Shown: positions 1,027 through 33,288, counted from the first letter of the stretch. The stretch: DNA of 64,000 bases from Lepidodermella squamata (GCA_047495785.1 JBLDXI010000001.1:4092001-4156000); one strand, 5' to 3'. The notes: a model not told the origin generated them from the sequence alone. A program made the numbers and translations.

Positions 1027-2301
1027 ATGGCGTTTGGCATGCCGCAAGTGGAGTTGACCGTTTTCAATAACAGCGCCAACCAGCTGTGGTCAGGAATCGA
1101 TAACATGCCAGGTGGGCACAGCCTCCGCAGTCATCAAATTGAAGCCCTGAAAGAAATCAAATACCATTTCCAATCGACATCATCCAACGTTGCCCTCGTT
1201 GTCATGCCGGCTGGAGCTGGCAAATCTGGCGTAGCTGTTTTAGCGCCTTACGTACTGAAATGCTGCCGCTGCTTGGTCATCACACCTTCCCGCACCATTT
1301 CGCAACAACTTTACCGCGATTTCACGGGAGATACGGATCCTAGGACTGCTTTTCTATTTCGGACCAAAGTCTACGGGTTCCCGGACGGAACGCAATGGCG
1401 CTCGATTCTACCCACGTGTCGGAACATCAAAGCCGCGAGTCATTTGCGGCAAGCGATTCTGGAAGAAGCGCCCCTTGTTATCACGAACGCTCACAAAATT
1501 GGCGGAAGTAACGACAGCAACGCCAACTTGAGCATCGACGACATAGCTAGTAATTTGTTCGATTTGGTGATTGTCGACGAGGCGCACCATTATCCGGCTA
1601 AAACTTGGCGACGGATTGTTGATCACTTCGGAGACAGCAAGAAAGTTTTCCTCACGGCTACACCCTTCCATCGTGAGAAGAGAATTCTTCCGATTGATCA
1701 GCAGTGTTTTGAAATGACCATCCAACAAGCCATTGATGCGGGTGTGATTCGGCCGATAGCATTTTTCAACATCGAAGATGATCAGGATCCTGCTCAATCG
1801 ACCGCTAAATACGTGGCCCAGTATCTCGGTATTCATGACAATATCGACCCTAGTGTGGTTCACAAGGCTTTGGTGGTTTGCCAGGAGAAGGAGGCACTCA
1901 ACCCTGTGACTGACATGGTGCAAGCTTTTGAAGCGATCAACTTCCCATTTGCTGTATCCAAATACCATGGCGACTTGACCACCAACGAACTGGACCAAAT
2001 CATGGACAGTTTCAAAAGTGGTCAAATCCGAGTCCTGATAGTTTGCGGCATGTTGAAGGAAGGTTTCGATCACAATCTCATCAGCGTCGTTGCGATCTAT
2101 CGCAACATTGCCAAGTCGAGCCGGGTGTTTTTCGAGCAAGTTCTCGGGCGAGCTGTTCGGAAGGCTTCTCCGACCGATCCTATCACTGCTGTTGCCATGG
2201 CTCACAAGAAGTTCAAGCAGATGGAGAACTTTGACAGCTTGTTCGGTCAGCAGGCCACTGTTCCCGATGATGAAGATGAGTTGGACGACGACGACCAGTG
2301 A
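1027..2301 (+). CDS. Intronless SF2 helicase, ResIII/Irc3/UvsW-like (two RecA domains), 424 aa
   Basis: Q-motif LRSHQ, Walker A MPAGAGKS, Ia LVITPS, Walker B VDEAHH, III LTATP, V LKEGFD, VI QVLGRAVR; acidic tail; AATAAA near 2460. Confidence 0.9.
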   Translation: MAFGMPQVELTVFNNSANQLWSGIDNMPGGHSLRSHQIEALKEIKYHFQSTSSNVALVVMPAGAGKSGVAVLAPYVLKCCRCLVITPSRTISQQLYRDFTGDTDPRTAFLFRTKVYGFPDGTQWRSILPTCRNIKAASHLRQAILEEAPLVITNAHKIGGSNDSNANLSIDDIASNLFDLVIVDEAHHYPAKTWRRIVDHFGDSKKVFLTATPFHREKRILPIDQQCFEMTIQQAIDAGVIRPIAFFNIEDDQDPAQSTAKYVAQYLGIHDNIDPSVVHKALVVCQEKEALNPVTDMVQAFEAINFPFAVSKYHGDLTTNELDQIMDSFKSGQIRVLIVCGMLKEGFDHNLISVVAIYRNIAKSSRVFFEQVLGRAVRKASPTDPITAVAMAHKKFKQMENFDSLFGQQATVPDDEDELDDDDQ

Positions 2302-2568
2302 CGTATTGAGTCTTTGCATGACGGCAAAATTCGTGCTGATCTTGATTTGACTTTTTATCTTCCCTTTTTCATTAAAGTTTGCTTTGTCATTAAAGACGCC
2401 TAAATTTGCGCATGACTGTTTTCATTCATTCAAACTTGCCAATTTTATGCTCGTTGGTCAATAAAACAATTACTGTTCAAAAGTCAGAGTCTTAATTTTT
2501 TTATAATTTACTTCACTTTCACAATATTTCACAAAACATTGGATGCAAGACCCTTTTTGTCACTTTTC

Positions 2569-4431
2569 TCAAGCCTTTTGATCAGATTCCCTCTTAGCCT
2601 TCAACTTGCTAATCGACATTTCAAGGTACTCGATAACTGCTTGGTGGGAGAATCTAACGGCTTCATCCATCGCCGTGAAACCGAATCGGTCCTTGGCCGT
2701 AATATTCTCAAGCGACAGATGACATTTCGTTATCAGAAACTCGACAACTTCTAGTTGCCCCTCGGCTACGGCGACGTGAAGAGCTGTCCTGCCGTCGTAA
2801 TCAACCGCGTCGCATAACTGCAGACCTTGGCCCATAATTTTTTTCAGAGCCGTTATGTCGCCATTCCCGGCGCAGAAGAGCGCGTTCGAAATTAGCGACG
2901 CTCGATAATCGATTTGCCGCAAGCGGGGATCCAATTTTTGATGCGTGCTTTTTACGTTGTCATAGTTATGAAATTTAAAAACTTTAACGAGTTCCTAAGA
3001 AGATAACTATTGATCGTGAATTTGAAAGAGCGAAATGTACCTCGCAAAACTGAATTCCTCGTACTGAGTTTCCAAGATCATCTAAAGGCGGTGACCAGAC
3101 GCAAATTCCGAGTAAATTGGGTACTACGACCATAATCGCGCCAGAAACGCTTGATTTAGCTGGTATGCCGACCTTGAAGGCGAATTGACCGCTGTAGTCT
3201 TGCATGCCACACGAATGCATTAACGATAAGGTATTTCGAATTGCATCGCCGCTCAGAACGCGATCTCGCTCATCAGGTAGTAGCGGGCAGTTTCCGCCAT
3301 TGGCTAAGGTTCCGGCTATAACTGCGGCAGATTCGCATGTAACCTCGATAGAACAGGCTTGGAAGTAAAGGTCTAGGGTGTCGGCTAGTTTTGCGTCAGG
3401 CGGGAATACTTTATTCTCCCGAAGATAATGGCCGATTGCGAAATTACGGTCGGCTGATTCTCGCTCGGACAAAAACTGGAGGAAAAATTATGTTTCAATT
3501 TCAAGTCTTCAATAGGATTTTATGAGGAGCCCAATACCAAAAAATACCAGTATCAGTTTTACCTTGGGGCTCTGTAAAACTTTAAGAGTTTCGTAAATAA
3601 GGATTACCATTGAGTTGCTGAAAGAAATGTGTTGATATCCAGCCATTTTTTTGATTTGGTTGAAAATGTAATCGTAGCGATCCGATACAGACTTGATATC
3701 ACGGGCCTTTCCATGAATCAGTGACATAACAGCCAAAGCTCCAGCAGCGATCAAAGGATTATGTGGTTTCCTACTTTGGTCAAGACTTAGCTCATTGCTG
3801 ATTCTTCCAGATGGTTCCCGACCAACGTAGCCATGAACTTCCTCCGTTGACAGCTCATTCAGGACCAAGGCGTAGATCAATGGCTGACAAAGTCCTTGTA
3901 AGCAAAAAGTAACCTGCGAATCGCCGGCCGAGAACCGTTGGCCATCAACGGTACAGATCGAAATGCCCCATAATTCAGGGTTGAAGCGAGCTAAAGGCGC
4001 AATGTAGGATGCAACTTCGCCCTTTTTCTTCATCGAACGGCAGCTCTCGAAAATTTCTGTAATTATGCGGCAAAAGTTGTCGAATTCTGGTATGATGAAG
4101 TCTTCTTTCATAGCTCGAATGATGATCTCATGGTTATCTTGAACGCAATCCATGAACTGCTCCTCGGTCAGCTGGGGCTCTTCGTCACCAGAGTCATCGT
4201 CGTGGCCACTTTGAAGGAACAAAGCGCGTTCGAAAAACCTTTGCAGCCTAGGATCGTCTTTCCGCAAGCCATTCATCATGATAAGCTAAAAAGTTCAATT
4301 CGAATGGTTAATTAATACAAATTTAGCTGATCGTTCACCTGGAAAAATTGGCGCAGGTAGATGACGTTCTTTTCAGGATCAGCCAATAGGCTGAAGCCTT
4401 TTTTAAGGGTCTCCATATCTTTTTCCTCCAT
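2569..4431 (-). CDS. GLS-like: Glutaminase-like protein (KGA type with C-terminal ankyrin repeats), catalytic residues substituted; exons 4431-4339, 4285-3608, 3475-3041, 2994-2569
   Basis: [88 protein letters not shown]; GT-AG introns keep frame. Start codon uncertain. Confidence 0.92.
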
Positions 4432-5092
4432 TTCCCAAAACGTTAATGAAAAGATAAAGCCAGATGAAGCTGTTACTTTTACATCTTACTTGGCCTTACT
4501 GCGGCAACTCCATTCGCCGAATAGCCCCAAGGCTTGCGTTAAATAGAAATTTCTTTCAAAGGCTATGATCCATTTATGACGCTTAATAAAATTGATTAAA
4601 ATTGACACAAAATGCCCTTGTGACTATTCTGCCAACTGCGAGTCTTATAGCTTATAGGTAACGAATGCGAAAAATTATCGCGGAAATTAATAGGAAGCGC
4701 TAAAAGTTTAGCAAAATTTCCAACATCTTCGGTCTAATGTGCAATTTATTCTTCTCAAGATCCCATGAGTTTTAATAGAGTATACAAATCTGTCGGAAAC
4801 CTAAAATTACTCAAAAATTGTTCTTCGAGCTTCGAGGCTCATTTCGGTAAGTTACAACTTTACCCGTAAAGTTCGTGAAGAACAGAAGATAATATGTAGT
4901 TTCCATACAATAACGAAATTATTGAAAAATTATTGAAAACGTTTTGCACTGGAATGAGACACAATTTAACATCGAGATCCACAACACATATAAAAACTCG
5001 GCCAAAATGATAAAGCCAACGGATTCAGCAAACTTTTCCGAAATCCAATGCACTGGTCGGAGAAGTGAGTCGTTTGCTGAGTCTAACCATCT

Positions 5093-7619
5093 CTATCTGC
5101 CACTTGAGCAAGAAACGACAGACGCCTTCCCGGGTCGAGTTGAACCACTTGCAGCACTGCCGGTACTCCCCACGCTTCGAACATGCGCAGGTTTGAAGCC
5201 ACCAGTTGTGGTGCGAGGACGAATTACCGGATCGACTTTAATTAGCAAACCAGCAGCCATTACGCTAGCATTCATCGCGACAATGCAGAATACCAGAGAT
5301 GCGTGCAGCCTGATCAGTGCCTCATTACTCGAACCGACAATCAAAGAAATGAAAACGCCAGCGAAAATGATGGTCAACAAGATGAAAATTGATAGAGAAG
5401 AGCGATGCATTTCAACTAGAAGACGAGGGTCGACATCGTAGCTGTTTTTGAAGCGCTTAATTACAGACTGAACTTTGAATGACAACAGTGTTGCTGATAG
5501 TAGCAAGATCGCTACCGTGGCTAAAGCAATAGTTGCGAAGACGATAGATACTGTAGATTGAACGATTGACTCAACCACAGCACATTCTGTAGTCTCATGT
5601 TGATAGGCCAAGCTTACGTCAGAGCTGGAGATCACGTATTCGAGTTGCACCTTCCTGGTGAATATTGGCTGGAAATAGAGCATAAAGATCACCATTGCAG
5701 GGGGAATGAAAATCAGAAATCTCGACCAATTTACCCTGCATCGCTTTCTACCTCTAATAGCTTTCAGCATAAGCAGAGCCCGGTATAACTTTTCCTCAGA
5801 AAACGCGAAATAAATTGATAGACCAATCACAGTGAGAATGACGGAAATAGAGCACCGTAGACTTGGGTCCGGATCGACTTTGGTTGGATTCGAAAAAATG
5901 CTGGTAAGCATTACTGCATCTCCAATGAGGATCCAAAAGTCATACATTGCAAGCGGGTATTCGTTTTTTCGTCGCTTAATTCGAATCCCAACAGCCAGAA
6001 GAGCTAAGACACAGATTAGCACTGCACTAATGCAGAACAAAGTTGTGCTGACGCTTAGTTGGATGATCGGTTGTTGCTGAGTCACCACAACAAGTTGGTC
6101 TTTCGGCATCGACCCGTCTAACGTTGACCATTTCAGTTTGTTGCGATAGATTACTGTCCTGTCTGGTTTTTGATTCGACTTGTAGTAACCAATGACCTCC
6201 TGATAACTAGACTGCCCGTCACCACTCATTCGCGTTTGGGTGTAGACGATTGGCATCGAGCCATTCGACCAATCTTTCGCTAGATCGTAACTCCACTCCC
6301 CCTTGATGCCAGTCAGAGAGACACGGCCTATAGCAAGCTTCATTATTCTGAAAATTTCATTTGGGTTGCTCATGAATTTTGGCGAGTTAGTCGTCCAATC
6401 GGCGAGTGTTTCATTCCGCTCGTTCAAAATTGACTCAGTTATATTGAGAATAGCCCCCATGATGATGCACTTGTCGTAGTAAGCTGGGACCCAATAGTCC
6501 ATTCCTATGGCTAGCTCTGGTTTCTCCACGCCTGCATTGACCGTTTGCACAAAATCATCCTTTGTCAATCCCGTTGTACCTTTGAAAGCCGGGCCGTAGA
6601 TATCGGAAAGAGGGGCGTCGCCGAAGAAAATTATGCTGGGCATGACATCAAGGATCATCTGCCGTGTACACCACTGGGATACAGAATCCGGCACCGGGAT
6701 ACTTTGGTCGAAATTCCATGAATATCCGATGATTACGTAGCCAGGGCCATACATGCCGTACTTCCTCATGTAACACACAACGGTTATAGCGTTGATTGCG
6801 CAGTTGAGGAATATTCTCGGTTCACGTTTTTTCATTTCGGAGAAAGTCGATTCCATCTCATATTCGTTATCCGCTGCCTCACGGAACTTAGCCATATAAG
6901 CCAGGGTGATGTTATTAGCCTCTAGGTTGTCCAAGTGATACTGCTCGCCATTTTGGTTGTACGAATTGGTATCTGTGATCAAAGCCACCCGGCTCCAACC
7001 CATTTTTCTCACGAATTCCGCGACTGAAATCATGTAGTAGTCTTGACGCTCTCCGAACGAGATGTAGTTGGGAAATTTCTCTCTTTTCCAAAATATTTCG
7101 GGCATGGGGTAGGTACTTGTCCCAATCATGCCGTAGGTGTTCATGAGATATGCGGTAACCATCTGGCTAGTCATAGCGAATTCAGCGAGGCCCATCAGTG
7201 GGAATCTGTTTGAAACCTCGTTATTCTCTAGCAACTTGGCCATCAATCCGCCAATCAAAGCAGAATCCTCAGCCTTTGAAATATATTAAAAATCAAATGA
7301 AAAATGCAATATTCTTTATGAGATTCGAACTCACTGCATCATCGAATATCTCAAAGTCGACTCGATAATTCGGGAGCCAGTTCGATTGCGCATGTAGCCA
7401 GTCCAGGGCAAGTTGTTGGCCGATCAAAACAGTCGGACCAAGGAGTAAGAAAGATATAGGCGTGATGATTTTTATAACCTTCGATCGGCTTGCCTCTGCG
7501 CTTTTGGCTTGTTGAATCTTGGGCAATTCCATGCTCCACGATAGCAACACCGTTTCAGTAGCATTGAATTCAAAGGCTTCGGAGAAGCTGAGAAATAATA
7601 GAAAAAGGATATTCATCAT
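5093..7619 (-). CDS. Class C GPCR, GABA-B-like (signal peptide, Venus flytrap, 7TM, no Cys-rich domain); exons 7619-7335, 7273-5093
   Basis: Signal peptide MMNILFLLFLSF; WLPNYRVDFEIFDD; GWSRVALI; YGMYGPGYV; W-x5-PKD linker; seven hydrophobic helices with TM3 Cys (SLRCS) and ECL2 Cys (TECA); 61-bp in-frame intron. Confidence 0.85.
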
Positions 7620-8541
7620 TAAGCAAAGTGAAATGAAAGCGCCGGGCAATCGCGTTTTATATGCTTCACGGATAAACCGGTTATCATTCGTCGTGAGTGC
7701 GCCTTGTTTGTGAAATTTCCTGTTGACATGTAACGAAGCTATCTTCATAAAAGTTTGTCTTCAACAAACGATCATGCTTCCTGTCAGACGACTCCTTGTC
7801 TTCTTCCCGCTCTAACAAACAAGTGACATATCGGACCCACGTTGTCTTAGGTTTCGCACTCACTTGCATGTGCTTCGGAATAAGCCTACAGCCTACAATC
7901 CTTGTCTCATTGACCCAGTTGTGTTTGTCTCTCGAGCGGAACTAGATAATATTTTAAATGCGATAAAAAATTGCAGAAAGCTGCTGCGTAGATCCGTCAA
8001 CATCAAAACACCTCGGAACTGTCGTATCGTCGATTTTTCAGCCACGCAACAGGGTGTCACTCTGTACCTATTTAGCAGTAAGTGCGTCTCGCAAGAGTGG
8101 CCCATAACACGCTTATTTACGCTGAACGGTTGCCAATAATTAAGACGAAAACGGAGGGAACTTGAAAATTGAAATTCTGAAAACTTAAAGCAATGATTTG
8201 CAAAAGCTCACAGCCTAATGACTGAACAATTTAAGATGGGAGGCCATAGCCATGGCCAGCTATACCCAAAGGAATATTGAAAATTAGATGTATTCTGTTT
8301 ATTCTGTTTATTACCTCTGTTTATTCATCGTAAAAATAATCATTAACATGTTTCTGAAAGGTTAGAAGAATGAAATAGGCCGCATCGCAGATAGATGATA
8401 ACCTTAACTAATACAAAGCTTCCGAACCTACAATGTTAACAAAAAAGAAGTGCCACACAGAAAAGGCAAGGGAGAAAAGGCCCATATCGTTTTTCGTTGC
8501 GTCACACAATTGGGGTGACTACGCTCTAATCTTCTTCTTAT

Positions 8542-11118: not shown

Positions 11119-13708
11119 TCAATTTTTCAGTTTCGATGAAATAATGAAGCCGGCGTTGACAACGCTGAAGCAAATGGAAATCGCAGAACGCAGGATCATT
11201 AGGGATTTTGCATTCTGACCCTGAAGAGCTGCGACAATACCTCCGGCAAATAACAGTAAAATTTCGCAGTAGATGCACACAATTGTTCTTTGCGTTTTCA
11301 TTGTTTTAGACGTGGCGGGAAAGCGGGCATCATTGATCACAAAATGTAGGATGGGAAAAGCAAACGCAGCAATAGAATCAATTGAAGCCCACTGATTATT
11401 CCTAAAATAACTTAAATTCCAGCCATTACTTCACCGGTACCCAACAAGCGGCATTCGTATCTATACGGTTGATAGATGAAGCCAAGATGGTTGAATAGCA
11501 GAGGCTCTTTATAGCTTCTAAAACTTTCCAATGGGGCAATCGCCAGCATGGCGGTCGTTATTGCCACCATCAGCATAGCCCAAGCTGCAGAAAAAGCTTT
11601 CAGATGCTTATCACTCAATTTGTCAACTGGGTTGGCTGAGAAATGACTGGTTGAAGTCGCGGATCGAGTTGATCCTGAATTCGAAGTCGCGTTGGAAATG
11701 TTTGGCGAGAGCATGTTACCTTGATACGCTTTCACGTGAATCAGCATGGCGATGTTACTGGCTGCTGGCTTCATTTGAAGAGCTCGTTGGGTCCTGAGCG
11801 CCAAGCCTGACATGGCCACAGAATAGCCGACGATAATGAAGGAAGTTGCTACAGAGCAGTTGGTACCAGCATCAATATTTGAAATGCCATTCGGCCAAGC
11901 GAAAGTAGCACAGAGGAGAGAGATGTCGCCCAATAGGGTGCATTTATCATAGGAGGACAACTTTGGCAGATTTTTAAGTCCGCTATAATCCTCGATTCTC
12001 CAGAATCTATTTACAATAAGTGTCAAAATCAGAACGAAGCCCACCATTACAATGATTGCCGCTGATACAGAGGACAATACCACGTAAGAACTGAAGGCCA
12101 TGGGTGGGTTCCTTATTTCAATGGTCAAAACTGTGTCCCGGGGTGGTAAGCCGTCATAGGCGCCCCAAGAAACAGGCTGAACGGTTACAATCGATTTCGG
12201 CGTCTGTAATCAACCAGCACTCGATCAATAAATGAGTCGCCTTTCCTATCATTAGCGATACGAATTTGAATGAAGGTTGTCGGGAAACGGCTGGAAGGTT
12301 CACTCGTCTTGTAATCAATTCCATATACCCCGTAATAGCCATTCACCAGAATTGTCGACGAGGCGTTGTACAAAATTTGAGCAAAAATCTCTGGCTGGTG
12401 CTTGAAACGCTCTGATCCAACTATCCATTGGCTCAAAGTCTCATTCCGAATTATTTTCAGCTCCTTTTCCACTTGATCAAGTAGAGTTGCGGTAACCAAA
12501 GCCCGATCTGTTGAGTAGGGAATGAAAGTGGCGTAAGCTTCTGGTGGGATGTATTCATAGATGAGACCATGCACCGAGTCGTAGACCTGTTGAAACGAGC
12601 TCCCCGTCGAATCCAGGTACCCAGGGATAGCTTCAGATAACGGGGACACAGCGATCAACATAGCCCGGGTGCACCACTTTGGTAAAGTGCCAGTTTGGTC
12701 GATGTCAATCCAAGACCATGAAGAGGCGAAGAAGACGTAACTAGGCCCGTGGATGCCGTATTTGTAAAACCAACAAGCCATTCTCGTGAGAAAATCAGTC
12801 CCAGTAACGATTATTCTAGGCTGGCGTCTAGCTGTTTCTTGCATAACCGTATCCAGCTCTTCTTCGTCCGGTATGGCGTAGCTGACTTTGTTAAGCAAAG
12901 CAACACTGATATTTGCAGCTTCGAAAGCCGTTAGCAGGTACCATCTAAAATGCTGTAATACCAGTGGATCTCCGTTATGGTGGCAACTTTCTGCCAATTG
13001 TAGTTCTTTGCGTACGCCAAATGCAAAAACGTCGTTCCAATCAGCAAGACCTATGAACCACTTATAACGCGCACGATTCTGCTTTACATAGGCTGCAACT
13101 TGGTGTACAGCTACCTGAATTCGGAAAACTGGTCAAATTGGTTTGAATTCGGTATAATCTCGCTATAATTTTTCAAACGTTTCAATCCAATATCAACTTA
13201 CCGAGGTGAAGTTGAAATTTCGAGCGACCAGAGCTGTCGTGCGCTGCGAGACTTAAGAGCCAAAGGTAGACGATTGTAGACCCAAGTTCGATTGTCATCG
13301 TTGCTGGCAGCCAGGTCTTCACCGTTACGCAGCTTTCTCACAAAATTCGGCACATCAACGTCAGCTATACATTCGTCATCGATCAATTCCAGCGCCAATT
13401 CATATCCCGGAAGCCATTTCCCATTTCTTCCGTACATTGTCAAAGGCTACTTGGTAAGCTTTTGAGCTGAGCGGTCCACGTGGGAAGTATTCCGGTCGGT
13501 AGAAGTTGATCTCCAGCACCAACACAAGGGTCCTTGAGTTGTTTCCAAGAGAAAACTTGGAGCGTCCTTGAAAATACGGCATGGTAACAGAGAACGGCAC
13601 TTTTCTGCCGGTATCGAGCAAATCTGCTTCGATTTTGGCTACGTCGATGGTCGTTGAAGGCTTAGCCATAACCACTTTGGGATAAAGGGCCATAAAAGAG
13701 GTAAGCAT
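11119..13708 (-). pseudogene. Frameshifted class C (GABA-B-like) GPCR pseudogene
   Basis: WLPGYELALELIDDEC, YNWQKVATI, RQPRII, YGIHGPSYVF, WGAYDGLPPRD and TM segments, split across frames at about 13420, 13240, 13010-12940, 12190 and 11370 without intron signals. Confidence 0.75.
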
Positions 13709-28214: not shown

Positions 28215-30750
28215 CTAGTGAGTTGCTCCATACGTTTTGAGCAATTTCGCAATATCAGTCAGATCACGAGAAGCAGCCAGCTGCAGAGCCGTCCGATTAT
28301 CCAAACCGCGAACGTGAAGCAGTGACCGGTCAATATTCTGGCTGTTTTTAGCTAGAATCAGCCTTACAACTTCAATGTGACCCTGGCGAACTGCGCAGTG
28401 AAGAGCTGTATCGCCATCACTCGCTCGAGACTTGAGGAAATCCGGCCTTCGATCGAGTAAATAGCGAACTATATCAGTGTGCCCGCTAATAGCTGCTAGA
28501 TGAATCGCAGATAGACCATCTAAAATGGAAGGAAATAAATTCAACTGAGAAGTGGTCGAAGTGTCCAGTTTCCTTACCAGTATCTTTCGCACTCAAATCA
28601 GCATTAGCTTCCTCAACTAAGAATTTAACAACATCGAAATGGCCCTGGTTACAAGCGTCCAGTAACGCAGTTAGGCCCTCCTGGCATCTCGAGTTGACAT
28701 CAGCTCCAGATTTCGCTAGAAATTCGACCATCTCAAGTTGCCCCAACTCAGCTGCTAGATGCAGAGCTGTGTATTGGTCCTTATCTTTTAGCTCCATAAT
28801 ATCGCTCGGGCAAATTTCGACTAAAAGTTTGACCATGTCAAGGTTTTTGCTTTCGACAGCTAGATGAATCGCGGTTCTTTCAAAGTCGGTTGAATCTGTG
28901 GCTCGGTAATTCGCACGGCACTCTTGTATCAAGTATTTCACAATAGAGGGCGAGTTACTCATCACCGCGAGTAGCAAAGGAGTGCGGTTCGCGTCCTTGT
29001 GCAAATGAGAGGGATATTCCAATAGGAAGTACTTGTAGGCCACTGAGTAAGGAGATCCGACTTTTGAGTCGAGAATTCGGCGAAGAGTTGCCAAGTCGTT
29101 GTTCTTGCAAGAATGGATCAAATTCGTCACATCGCTAGATTCCTATAGGGAAAGTCCTCATCATCGATTTTTGCAGACTTTAAATGACTCACTTTTTTAT
29201 TCGAATTGGTAAGGTCACTCGGGTCGATAGAGAAAACGTTGGCCATGTGAGGGATTAACTCCTTGATCTTCTGTTGCACTGATTCGGAGCAGCTGAACTG
29301 AACATCGGCGTCGAACCCGTTTTGAATCATCGTTTCCAAGTTGCTTATCTAACGGTAAAAAACCGATAAACGATAAAAACTTATATCGACCGTCGATCTA
29401 TTTACGAGAAATTTTAGGGACATTAGGATTGTTTCAGCCAGTGATTATATGAAATATCAAAAATTGCGAGGACTCTGATATCAAGCTGATGATCGAATCG
29501 AAGGTCACAAATTAGTTTTACGGTTTCCCATTGTCATTTTCCGAAAATCAGAACATTTCCCGCGACGTTTCCATCAGTTTTGCCTCACTCATTCAGGTTT
29601 ACTTTAAATCAGGGTAGGCTGGTCTGAAATACAAATTTAGGTTTGCGGTAACAGCACCAACTTTTTCAGGAGAGGAATGGAGATAACGTTTGTCCTTTGC
29701 TATTGAAAATTTCAATTAGATTAATTAGATTAATGGGAAATGTGAACAATAAATAGGAATCCATATAGGATAGGCGCGGCACTCGATGCTCAGTGATTGA
29801 TTTTATAGCTAAGGGTATAAGGATTGTTCTAAATTTTCCTTTATAGCTAAGGGTATAAGGATTGTTCTAAATTTTCCTTTATAGCTAAGGATTGTTCTAA
29901 ATTTTTCGGCTGGAAGATTTAGAAACCAGCAATAAATGCTTGAAATCTCCATCCTGGTGGCTCCCTGTTCGCATGATAAGGATCCGACCCATTTAGGCCT
30001 AGTAAAAATGTTGGCTTTTATTACAACAACATTCTTCTACTGATTCTCTTCAACTCAGCAAGCTTACCTTCCTTTCTCGAGCCATCACATCTTCGTAAGC
30101 AGCTATTGTCTCGTCGATATCTCGCTCAAAAATCGACATTGAGTTCAATATCGCCATGCGCTGCTTCAATTGCTCCATCTCCTCAGGTGTCAATAGCGCA
30201 TCTTCGGCCACTTTTTCAAACTGAGAGTACAAGCTACCACCTAGATCTTTTGCTTCCTGCAGCAATTGCCGCTTTGTAAGCTCGACGAATCGAATCAAAC
30301 AGTCGAATTCTCGAACAATTTTCTGCTGAACTTGCTCGACTCTCAGGTCCAAAGTTCGCTGAGCATTAGCCAACTTATCAGGCAGATTTACAGCAGCATT
30401 GTGGAGGCGATTTTCGAACTAAAAAACGATTTTGTAACGCTTCGAATAATGTTTTAATGACTACCTGGTCAGTTAGTCCTACAGCTTCAATTTTCAGCCG
30501 TTCAGCGTGCAAAAAGAAGCAGTGTGAGCAAAAATTGCGCGAACAGTGCCTGCAATTCGTCCCATCATTTTGTTGCTCAGAATGCATGCAATAGGCAACA
30601 TTCGGAAAATTATAGGAACCTAAAACAAAATTTGAAGAAAACCAAATCAGCTTATCAATCATCGGGCAGTTTACCTTCTATCCGGGGTAATTTCGACGGG
30701 TTTATGCTGCCAGGTTGAGCTTCACTTAACGCCACTCGAGAAACAGGCAT
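28215..30750 (-). CDS. B-box-like/coiled coil/ankyrin-repeat protein (TRIM-ANK paralogue A, no RING); about 5 exons
   Basis: MPVSRVALSE..; CMH-x8-CRHC-x3-FCSHC-x3-H-AERLKIE; coiled coil 30050-30420; about 7 ankyrin repeats (RTPLLLAV, RTAIHLAV, YTALHLAA, LTALLDAC, LSAIHLAA, DTALHCAV, RTALQLAA). Confidence 0.8.
29803..29903. repeat. Tandem repeat, 38-bp unit, about 2.7 copies (intronic)
   Basis: TTTATAGCTAAGGGTATAAGGATTGTTCTAAATTTTCC repeated. Confidence 0.85.
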
Positions 30751-30989
30751 TTTTACAACAAAATATCTAAAAAAGCGCAAATTTTATTGTTCAACCCCAA
30801 CAAAAGTTAGTAACAAAATGGTATGAAAAACTGAAATGACCACAGGAAATTCAATTTCTAAAAGCATTTTTAACAATTAACTGATTCAATCCATCTAAAA
30901 TTTCTTGATTTCCTGTAGTTATTTCTAGATCAAAATATCAAGAATCAAGTTGCTTATGTAAAGCGTAGCAAGTGTTGAAGGTCAACAAA

Positions 30990-33288
30990 TCAAAATGCAC
31001 CATGCCGGCGCAACAGCTGCTCAATTTCAGTCAGCTCCTTAGTGATAGCCCCCTGCAAGGGGGTGCGGCCGTCCATGCCACGTGACAGAATGATGTCTCG
31101 CTGGTTGGACGAGCTCAGCTTGATGAGTAGAAATCGAATCACTTTGATGTTCTGTTTGACCTTTGATGAGCTGAAAACGGCGCAGTGAAGTGGCGTGTCT
31201 TGATCACTGGTCCGCATGCTGATGAAGTCTGGCCTGATTTCGAGTAGATAGGCAACAACAGGGAGATGGTCACCCATAGCAGCCAGATGGACAGCATACA
31301 ACCCCTCTGTAAAATCAAAAGTAAAAGGTTAGGAAGAACAAATTGAGTGATTCTTTCAATCCTTACCTGAATCCTTAGCATCGAGATCAGCCCCCTTGCT
31401 GCAAAGGTATTTGACCACGTCCAGGTGGCCATTGTTAGCCGCGTCCAAAAGAGGGGTCTGGCCTTCCATGCATCGGTTTTCAATGTTGGCCCCGCGTTCG
31501 GCCAGGTACGCTACAACACTCAGATGGCCACTTTCGGCTGCAACGTGCAGGGCAGTGTATTGATCGGGGTCTTTTGCTTCGAGCAAAATCTCGCTCGAAG
31601 GGGTTGATTCCATGATTTTTCGCAATTTTATCAGGTTACCGCTTGCGGCAGGTGAATGGAGATCGATTTTAGCGAGGGCTTTTCGGTTACTTGCCAGTCT
31701 CTAATAAATAGTCAAATAGGTTAATGAAACTTTGCCGGAAAGGAAAGGAAAGGAAAGGAAAGGAAAGGAAAGGAAAGGAAAGGAAAGGAAAGGAAAGGAA
31801 AGGAAAGGAAAGGAAAGGAAAGGAAAGGAAAGGAAAGGAAAGGAAAGGAAAGGAAAGGAAAGGAAAGGAAAGGAAAGGAAAGGAAAGGAAAGGAAAGGAA
31901 AGGAAAGGAAAGGAAAGGAAAGGAAAGGAAAGGAAAGGAAAGGAAACAGGAGCTTACCTTGTCATTGGCTTGAACAGATTTCCTCGCAGATTTGACGCTG
32001 CTCGCAATTTTTTTCTGCACAGTGAAGCGAGGTAATTAGAAATTTTAAAGACCTTGAAGCTCATTTAAACTACCTGAGCCAATACAGGGAGACTAAATCT
32101 GGCAGTAGCATGAGAAATCTAGAAATAAGGGAGTTTGAATCGCGATTTTAGGGGATCCAAACTCTTACTTGTTGAGGCTGCGGGCTTGGCACCTTGGCTT
32201 CTTCGGCATTTTCAGCCCTATCGAGCAATAATTCACCGTCATCCAAAGTCGGAAGAGGGGTCGGCTGCGGCTCTTCAACCTCGACGCTGGGAATTTCTTC
32301 TGTTTTGTTGCGATTCTCGTCAGTGATTGAAGTCTCAAAACGGATGAGATTTCTGGCGTCACGCTTGATTGACTCCATTACAGCTGAATTGATAGTGATA
32401 TCTATGCGAGCCGGTTCCAGGGTGCCCAGTTGTTCCATCTATGAGTAAACAAAGGATTTTTTTACGAAATTTCAGTGAAAATTTAGAATTTTGGCCCAAA
32501 GACGCAGAAATGGAGTGTCAATCGAGGAGAGATCGAATGAGGTGATTTCGGCCGAATCCACCTCAAACAAAAAGAGGTGCTACCCTGTACCCTGATTCTC
32601 ACTCCTTACCTTTTGAGCGAGAGAAGCAATATTGGAAAACAAGCCAAGCATGTCCTCGATAGGCGTGCAAAGCGGCGAAAGAGGTCCCAACTGCTCGAAT
32701 TGCTTGCCAAGTTCGACCTTCACGCTTTGGCCACTTGTCAACTGCATCGCAGTCTCGCCCGCTTCACCAGCTACCTTCATTTGAGCGTCCACAAATCCGT
32801 CGACTTCCCGTAGCAATTCATCGTGCTGGGCTCTCAGGATTTCAAAGAGTGAGTCAAAGGTTGAAGTGATACACCGACGCGCTTCATTGGCTCGATTTTC
32901 AACATCAGACTTGAACGAATCCAATTTCGACTCAAAGCTTTGGTTGAGTGATTCGTAACGCTGGTCCATCTGGATGAGTTAAACGGGTACACTTTATAAG
33001 GAAAATCACTCAGGCGTGACTTACTGATCCTAACATTTCGCGCGTTTCGATTTTGACGCGTTCGATGTGTAGAAACATACAAATCAAGCAAAAGTCTTTG
33101 TTACAGTGGGAACAAGCAACACAACCAGTCGCAGCCTTCGCCTTATCGTCGTGAACGCAATCAGAACCGTGACGGGGGTTTGGCGCTGGTTTAAGCGACG
33201 TCTCCACCTTGATCGATTTCGCTATGGTGTCCGGGGAGTAGTTCGCGGGGTCGAGCGGCCGTTTACGGTTCAGGCCAGGTTGTTCCAT
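30990..33288 (-). CDS. B-box-like/coiled coil/ankyrin-repeat protein (TRIM-ANK paralogue B, no RING); about 6-7 exons
   Basis: CVH..CSHC-x3-FCLIC-x3-H-IERVKIE; coiled coil 32610-32969; acidic/Pro linker; ankyrins DQYTALHVAAESG, EGQTPLLDAANNGH, DTPLHCAV closely matching paralogue A, with an intron at the same position. Confidence 0.8.
31737..31946. repeat. Perfect (GGAAA)42 microsatellite in an intron of paralogue B
   Basis: 210 bp uninterrupted, starting about 10 bp after a GTAAG donor on the - strand. Confidence 0.97.

Follow-up and report, generated by a model that had tools for sequence, protein, structure and literature searches.

A gene on the minus strand at positions 2569-4431 of the window (the whole 64-kb stretch of Lepidodermella squamata DNA analysed here) encodes a protein that has the domains of an animal glutaminase and that has lost the central residues of its active site. 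Our analyses indicate that this locus is likely to be an expressed, conserved dead paralogue of glutaminase that acts non-catalytically. Glutaminase is central in nitrogen and neurotransmitter metabolism and is a cancer drug target, and its activity depends on assembly into tetramers and filaments.

The gene model was obtained from an ORF listing and a six-frame translation. It is of the GLS/KGA type and consists of four exons with 543 codons in total, separated by three GT-AG introns with every junction in phase 0:

Exon 1, 4339-4431, minus strand: 31 codons; ATG at 4431; beginning of EF-hand_14; GT donor after 4339
Intron 1, 4286-4338, minus strand: 53 nt, GT-AG, phase 0; placed by homology to the related gene L001, without read support
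Exon 2, 3608-4285, minus strand: 226 codons; remaining EF-hand_14 and first half of the glutaminase domain; carries Y249 (4004-4006), Q285, G286, C288, Q289, S318 and A335
Intron 2, 3476-3607, minus strand: 132 nt, GT-AG, phase 0; absent from the read set X2
Exon 3, 3041-3475, minus strand: 145 codons; second half of the glutaminase domain (PF04960 positions 138-275); carries E381, R387, N388 and Y414, all kept, and Q466, S483 and V484
Intron 3, 2995-3040, minus strand: 46 nt, GT-AG, phase 0
Exon 4, 2569-2994, minus strand: 141 codons and the stop codon (2569-2571); linker and C-terminal ankyrin repeats

A stop codon lies in frame 19 codons 5' of the ATG. Exon 1 aligns with the uninterrupted ORF of L001 and is the least certain of the four exons, since coverage by X2 is absent there. 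At intron 3, the join FCE/ELVKVF agrees with both the uninterrupted L001 and the canonical glutaminases. Homology searches were run exon by exon, and the exon rows were combined column-wise in the alignment only. Pfam assigned EF-hand_14 (PF17959) and PF04960 to exon 2, PF04960 to exon 3, and Ank_4, Ank_2 and Ank to exon 4, with PF04960 E-values of 5e-35 (exon 2) and 1e-52 (exon 3). Searches with phmmer against solved human KGA chains gave E-values of 1e-54 and 3e-61 for the same two exons. The protein thus has the animal architecture of EF-hand_14, glutaminase domain and C-terminal ankyrin repeats, which is also the three-domain architecture of human GLS (KGA/GAC) and GLS2. The gene model contains no N-terminal mitochondrial presequence; because one is likewise lacking from the ORFs called for canonical genes of the lineage, no conclusion on localisation was drawn.

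Active-site positions were assigned in human KGA numbering from the phmmer alignments to PDB chains and from an alignment with 117 canonical animal glutaminases. Six of them differ from human KGA:

S286 to G, codon 3893-3895, minus strand: KGA alignment
K289 to Q, codon 3884-3886, minus strand: KGA alignment
F318 to S, codon 3797-3799, minus strand: activation-loop "lock" residue
N335 to A, codon 3746-3748, minus strand: KGA alignment
Y466 to Q, codon 3200-3202, minus strand: KGA alignment
G483 to S, codon 3149-3151, minus strand: KGA alignment

On the minus strand, a ten-residue motif at 3878-3907 holds both G286 and Q289, a second ten-residue motif holds A335, SCGMQDYSG holds Q466 and AKSSVSG holds S483. 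The catalytic dyad Ser286-x-x-Lys289 is therefore absent, with G and Q at positions where the canonical set has S in 116/117 and K in 117/117 sequences. The proton relay Tyr466, present in 117/117 canonical sequences, is lost to Gln, while the Tyr249 lid is kept, and the activation-loop Phe318 (Tyr in GLS2) is replaced by Ser. Residues kept are Y249, Q285, E381, R387, N388, Y394, Y414, Q416 and V484. Five of the six substrate contacts (Q285, N335, E381, N388, Y414, V484) are accordingly intact, the sixth, N335, being A, and the tetramer and filament interface residues R387, Y394, N375 and Q416 are all retained. One to three bases separate each altered codon from the canonical one (Y has become CAA, N GCT and F AGC, for example), and at several codons the number is two or three. 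Such multi-base differences mark the changes as old and not as miscalls or single-base errors.

The functional weight of these positions is known from the human enzyme. KGA activity is strongly reduced by S286A, K289A, Y249A or Y466A (PMC4929687). In the active filament, F318 is in cation-pi contact with K289; together with Y249 it also serves as the lock that shuts over the substrate (PMC9949068). N335, which is A here, binds the substrate alpha-carboxylate. With the dyad, Tyr466, Asn335 and Phe318 all lost, we infer by analogy with human KGA mutagenesis that the protein would be unable to hydrolyse glutamine by the mechanism of its family. By sequence and architecture it belongs to PF04960, the family of the serine-dependent glutaminases (EC 3.5.1.2), yet it should not be classed as a glutaminase enzyme, since the dyad, Tyr466 and Phe318 are missing.

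To place these losses against the background rate of change, we used 130 ultra-conserved columns, each at least 97% conserved across the 117 canonical animal glutaminases, with 12 catalytic or lock columns and 118 others. The window gene retains 90% of the ultra-conserved columns and is changed at 13/130: 5/12 catalytic or lock columns as against 8/118 others (Fisher p = 0.0024). The same test on L001 gave p = 0.0003. In three canonical relatives from the same lineage (gene 2 of the contig L002, P0029 and P0030), none of the 12 catalytic columns is changed and 1-3 of the others are; in L002 gene 1, where 10 of the 12 columns could be scored, the single mismatch (1/10, at E381) falls where a piece ends and is an artefact of the alignment. 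The concentration of changes in the catalytic site exceeds chance. Constraint outside the active site is somewhat relaxed and far from lost, because eight of 118 outside columns are changed compared with 1-3 in the canonical sisters.

A sequence-only reading had earlier proposed a pseudoenzyme at 3185-3910. That span does lie within the gene, which runs over 2569-4431, and takes in no more than part of exons 2 and 3. The motifs quoted in that reading were found by translation and coordinates on the minus strand where it had placed them. Its four replacements (S286G, K289Q, N335A and Y466Q) and its four kept residues (Y249, E381, N388 and Y414) hold in the KGA alignment, although its residue list had missed F318S. 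The alignment to GLS orthologues that it suggested as a check was made with the 117 canonical sequences and gave the same losses. Its further statements, that loss is concentrated in the active site and that the flanking sequence, ankyrin tail and splice frames are preserved, agree with the enrichment above (5/12 versus 8/118, Fisher p = 0.0024), the intact four-exon frame with phase-0 GT-AG introns, and the Pfam ankyrin matches in exon 4.

The relative L001 was found by a word search with the exon-2 ORF. It encodes the protein P0001 on an 8.2-kb ENA metagenome scaffold (assembly ERZ23486764, scaffold_10851). Its identity to the window gene is about 59-60% in the exon-2 region, 74% in the exon-3 region and 62% pooled. 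The two genes differ in structure, with one intron, placed elsewhere, in L001 versus three in the window gene, and a comparison of synteny showed no common neighbours beyond the glutaminase gene itself. P0001 carries K289L, F318S, N335T, Y466Q and G483S, so that L and T stand at 289 and 335 where the window gene has Q and A. Secondary losses are complementary: S286G occurs in the window gene only, whereas L001 keeps S286 and has instead lost Y249 (to S) and Y414 (to F). Common primary losses with differing secondary ones are expected if the common ancestor had abandoned catalysis and the catalytic residues still left were then freed from constraint. Kept in both proteins are Q285, E381, R387, N388 and V484.

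The replacements Q466, S318 and S483 are identical in the two proteins. At both serines, the window gene uses AGC while L001 uses TCG (318) and TCA (483), codons of a different serine family, and this split points to selection on the new residues over drift. Both proteins also have a new Cys at 288, a position occupied by V or S in canonical sequences. Among 266 glutaminase-family proteins fetched, only P0001 combines Y466Q with loss of K289 and N335. Word searches for further members of the clade used the exon-2 ORF, P0001 and exon 3 as queries, with candidates of about 80-721 aa. The protein word searches showed the window gene's own protein to be absent from the searched collection, and a degenerate DNA pattern for a 12-residue motif specific to the pseudo-glutaminases gave 0 matches in JGI metagenome contigs. 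The clade is thus described from two members only, the window gene and L001. As a side observation, four metagenome and Logan fragments (P0196, P0202, P0226 and P0246) have Asn in place of Tyr466, in the motif NCCGMNDYSG, and are 45-50% identical to exon 3.

For phylogeny, the exon-2 and exon-3 regions were each given a tree of their own. Both trees group the window gene with L001, with support of 100/100 and 99/96. The stem of the pair is long in the exon-2 tree, at 0.91 changes per column, and its terminal branches, at 0.39 and 0.58, have lengths usual for canonical sequences; the pseudo-glutaminase evolved fast once and then settled. Four canonical genes, all of them from metagenomes only, share a clade with the pair nested among them (100/100): the two tandem genes of L002, P0029 and P0030. 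This whole clade lies apart from the nematode clade. The nesting shows that the pseudo-glutaminase goes back to a canonical glutaminase that was duplicated within one animal lineage. The canonical relatives share lineage-typical features of the activation loop with the pseudo-pair, for example E320; L002 gene 2, P0029 and P0030 differ from the window gene in having the canonical residue at all 12 catalytic or lock positions. P0001, P0029 and P0030 all come from assembly ERZ23486764, on scaffolds with a GC of 0.387-0.391. Given the same assembly and the matching GC, active and dead paralogues probably coexist in the animal from which L001 derives.

The two L002 genes (365-1778 and 2889-4415) are canonical glutaminases in tandem on one 5.2-kb contig with 64% mutual identity, and glutaminase duplication is therefore recurrent in the lineage. 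Outside the clade of the window gene, an annotated glutaminase of the annelid Dimorphilus gyrociliatus (P0032, DgyrCDS5011) lies on a long branch. It has S286A, F318S, S482A, G483S and V484I and keeps K289, N335 and Y466, so that F318S and G483S recur there. This protein may represent an independent origin of a dead or altered glutaminase.

Selection was assessed by exon-wise Nei-Gojobori counts. The window gene and L001, pooled over 490 codons, gave a pN of 0.26 and a pS of 0.85; since pS exceeds 0.75, dS is saturated and undefined, and dN/dS is not computable from this pair. Between L002 gene 1 and gene 2, two canonical genes that have diverged to a similar degree, pN is 0.25 and pS 0.85. 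Protein-level constraint on the pseudo pair is equal to that on the canonical pair, and both pseudo genes keep frames of more than 500 codons across synonymous saturation. The inactivation is old and predates the split from L001.

Two read sets were used to examine expression and the reliability of the sequence, and their contigs were compared with the window over 2400-4700. X1 is a 2024 DNA run, probably of the source sample, that contains 99% of sampled words. X2 is a 2015 run from a separate study under another organism label and contains 32% of sampled words; its RNA status was guessed from the record and is supported by a splice junction. Short contigs of X2 extend over 2631-4324 with at least 99% identity in 37/40 pieces and cover exons 2-4 (exon 4 at 2682-2916), but neither exon 1 nor the final ~110 bases of the CDS. 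Depth in X2 is zero in the flanks and in the bin 3478-3554 inside intron 2, and loose ends at 3476 and 3608 run straight into the other exon (...SFSNSM/FLSERE...). From this junction it follows that the gene is transcribed and that intron 2 is correctly removed. At the RNA level, then, the pseudo-glutaminase is transcribed and spliced. Neither X1 nor X2 has a differing letter over the covered gene, including the bins with the changed codons. Upstream of the gene, at 4587-4700, X1 has two contig versions, one with 6 differences in 114 bases, which are probably allelic.

Two outcomes that the sequence-only reading had named as speaking against a pseudoenzyme were looked for, and the data point the other way. 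Lack of expression together with neutral evolution is contradicted by transcription in X2 and by a pN of 0.26 against a saturated pS of 0.85, and the runs X1 and X2 match the window where canonical residues might have appeared. The idea of a pseudoenzyme under selection is supported by the intact frame, transcription, the losses shared with L001, the canonical-like constraint and the nesting among canonical genes. The pseudo-glutaminase has long been maintained and is expressed, and we infer that it acts by binding and not by catalysis.

Several observations run against this conclusion, and the alternatives that they suggest differ greatly in weight. The retention of S286 in L001 and the new Cys288 in both proteins could be taken to mean that the protein is still an enzyme with another nucleophile or another substrate, using Cys288 or, in L001, S286; the pocket residues, moreover, are not randomised. 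We find this quite improbable. No nucleophile at the catalytic position is common to both proteins, and the K289 base and the Y466 relay, at either of which a single alanine change strongly reduces KGA activity as described above, are absent from both. In the S-x-x-K helix, residue 288 is two residues on from S286, and by general helix geometry it would presumably point away from the pocket. The 8/118 changes at non-catalytic ultra-conserved columns, compared with 1-3 in the canonical sisters, and the long stem branch would fit a functionless duplicate that is decaying and has yet to acquire stops. Against this stand the intact 543-codon frame and splice sites of three introns, transcription and splicing, the 90% of ultra-conserved columns kept, and an intact L001 at saturated synonymous divergence with a pN of 0.26. 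As pN equals that of the canonical pair and frames of more than 500 codons are kept, a decaying pseudogene is very unlikely. That the true gene is canonical and its changes are a sequencing or assembly artefact has a negligible probability: the codons differ by multiple bases, the 2024 DNA run and the 2015 run agree with the window, and a metagenome relative has the same changes.

What the protein might do without catalysis is a separate question, on which we hold views of lesser strength. The particular roles suggested in the sequence-only reading, a Gln/Glu sensor, a scaffold or a dominant-negative subunit of glutaminase tetramers or filaments, are putative. As one sub-type of pseudoenzyme, the protein might be a small-molecule sensor whose remodelled pocket binds glutamine, glutamate or a related ligand and which reports the ligand's level, alone or together with partner proteins, a possibility that we regard as real and on the whole doubtful. 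Consistent with it, both pseudo-proteins retain Q285, E381, R387, N388 and V484, and the new Q466, S318 and S483 are the same in the two although their synonymous sites are saturated. In addition, the engineered, catalytically dead mutant GAC Y466W can still bind substrate and phosphate, and the filaments that it forms are persistent (PMC9949068). That mutant resembles the pseudo-glutaminase in that Y466 is replaced and the fold is kept, and differs from it in keeping S286, K289, F318 and N335, all four of which the pseudo-glutaminase has lost. Less favourably for a sensor, N335 is lost in both proteins with differing replacements (A and T), K289 likewise (Q and L), L001 is further without Y249 and Y414, and the substrate lock made by F318 and Y249 has been lost. 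Because N335 is lost in both and Y414 in L001, the canonical amino-acid binding mode is kept only in part and not preserved as a whole.

We prefer, tentatively and at less than even confidence, a model in which the pseudo-glutaminase would be a regulatory, non-catalytic subunit that joins the animal's own active paralogues in mixed assemblies, by way of the oligomer surfaces it has retained. This model is favoured because the oligomer fold, both accessory domains and the interface residues are kept, and because dead paralogues that regulate active relatives are a known pattern. Examples are plant PDX1.2 with PDX1 and viral pseudo-GATs (PMC6829848, PMC7605207); as in the assembly of L001, a dead paralogue occurs there beside active ones, although the folds are unrelated to that of glutaminase. 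In the co-assembly model the ankyrin tail would stay available for partner binding, and the C-terminus of GLS2 is known to bind Rac1 independently of activity (PMC4749555). A more specific version, by analogy with GAC Y466W, is that the protein is a substrate-gated assembly subunit: glutamine bound via the Q285/E381/N388 side, and not turned over, would let it cap or lock hetero-filaments formed with the active paralogues, as a glutamine sensor setting polymerisation and activity. We consider this version rather unlikely.

A full-text search of the literature found no description of a pseudoenzyme in the PF04960 family, its matches being only the unrelated amidotransferase and PDX cases, and a pseudoenzyme on the glutaminase fold seems to be new. 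It would offer a natural experiment on the non-catalytic features of the fold, namely the oligomer surfaces, the ankyrin tail and half of the pocket, and would be a candidate endogenous regulator or ligand sensor on a glutaminase scaffold. Ser318, Gln466 and Ser483, conserved between the two proteins, are positions worth testing in the human enzymes.

The surroundings of the gene were also examined. No second glutaminase was found in the 64-kb window, nor any Rfam or tRNA match. The ankyrin tail has weak similarity (27-54% over 24-96 residues) to ankyrin arrays at 28347-31649 on the minus strand, which is probably a generic ankyrin resemblance. Directly downstream and convergent with the glutaminase gene is an intronless ORF of 424 aa (1027-2301, plus strand) with ResIII, Helicase_C and DEAD matches. 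On the other side, a gene at 5093-7748 on the minus strand encodes a ligand-binding region of the ANF_receptor family and, after it, a membrane part with several spans, resembling a class-C GPCR of the amino-acid-receptor type; a 26%-identical paralogue of it lies 5 kb further on (11412-12997, minus strand). The first of these receptor-like genes ends ~660 bp upstream of the start of the pseudo-glutaminase on the same strand, and its adjacency to a pseudoenzyme related to glutamine and glutamate may be due to chance.
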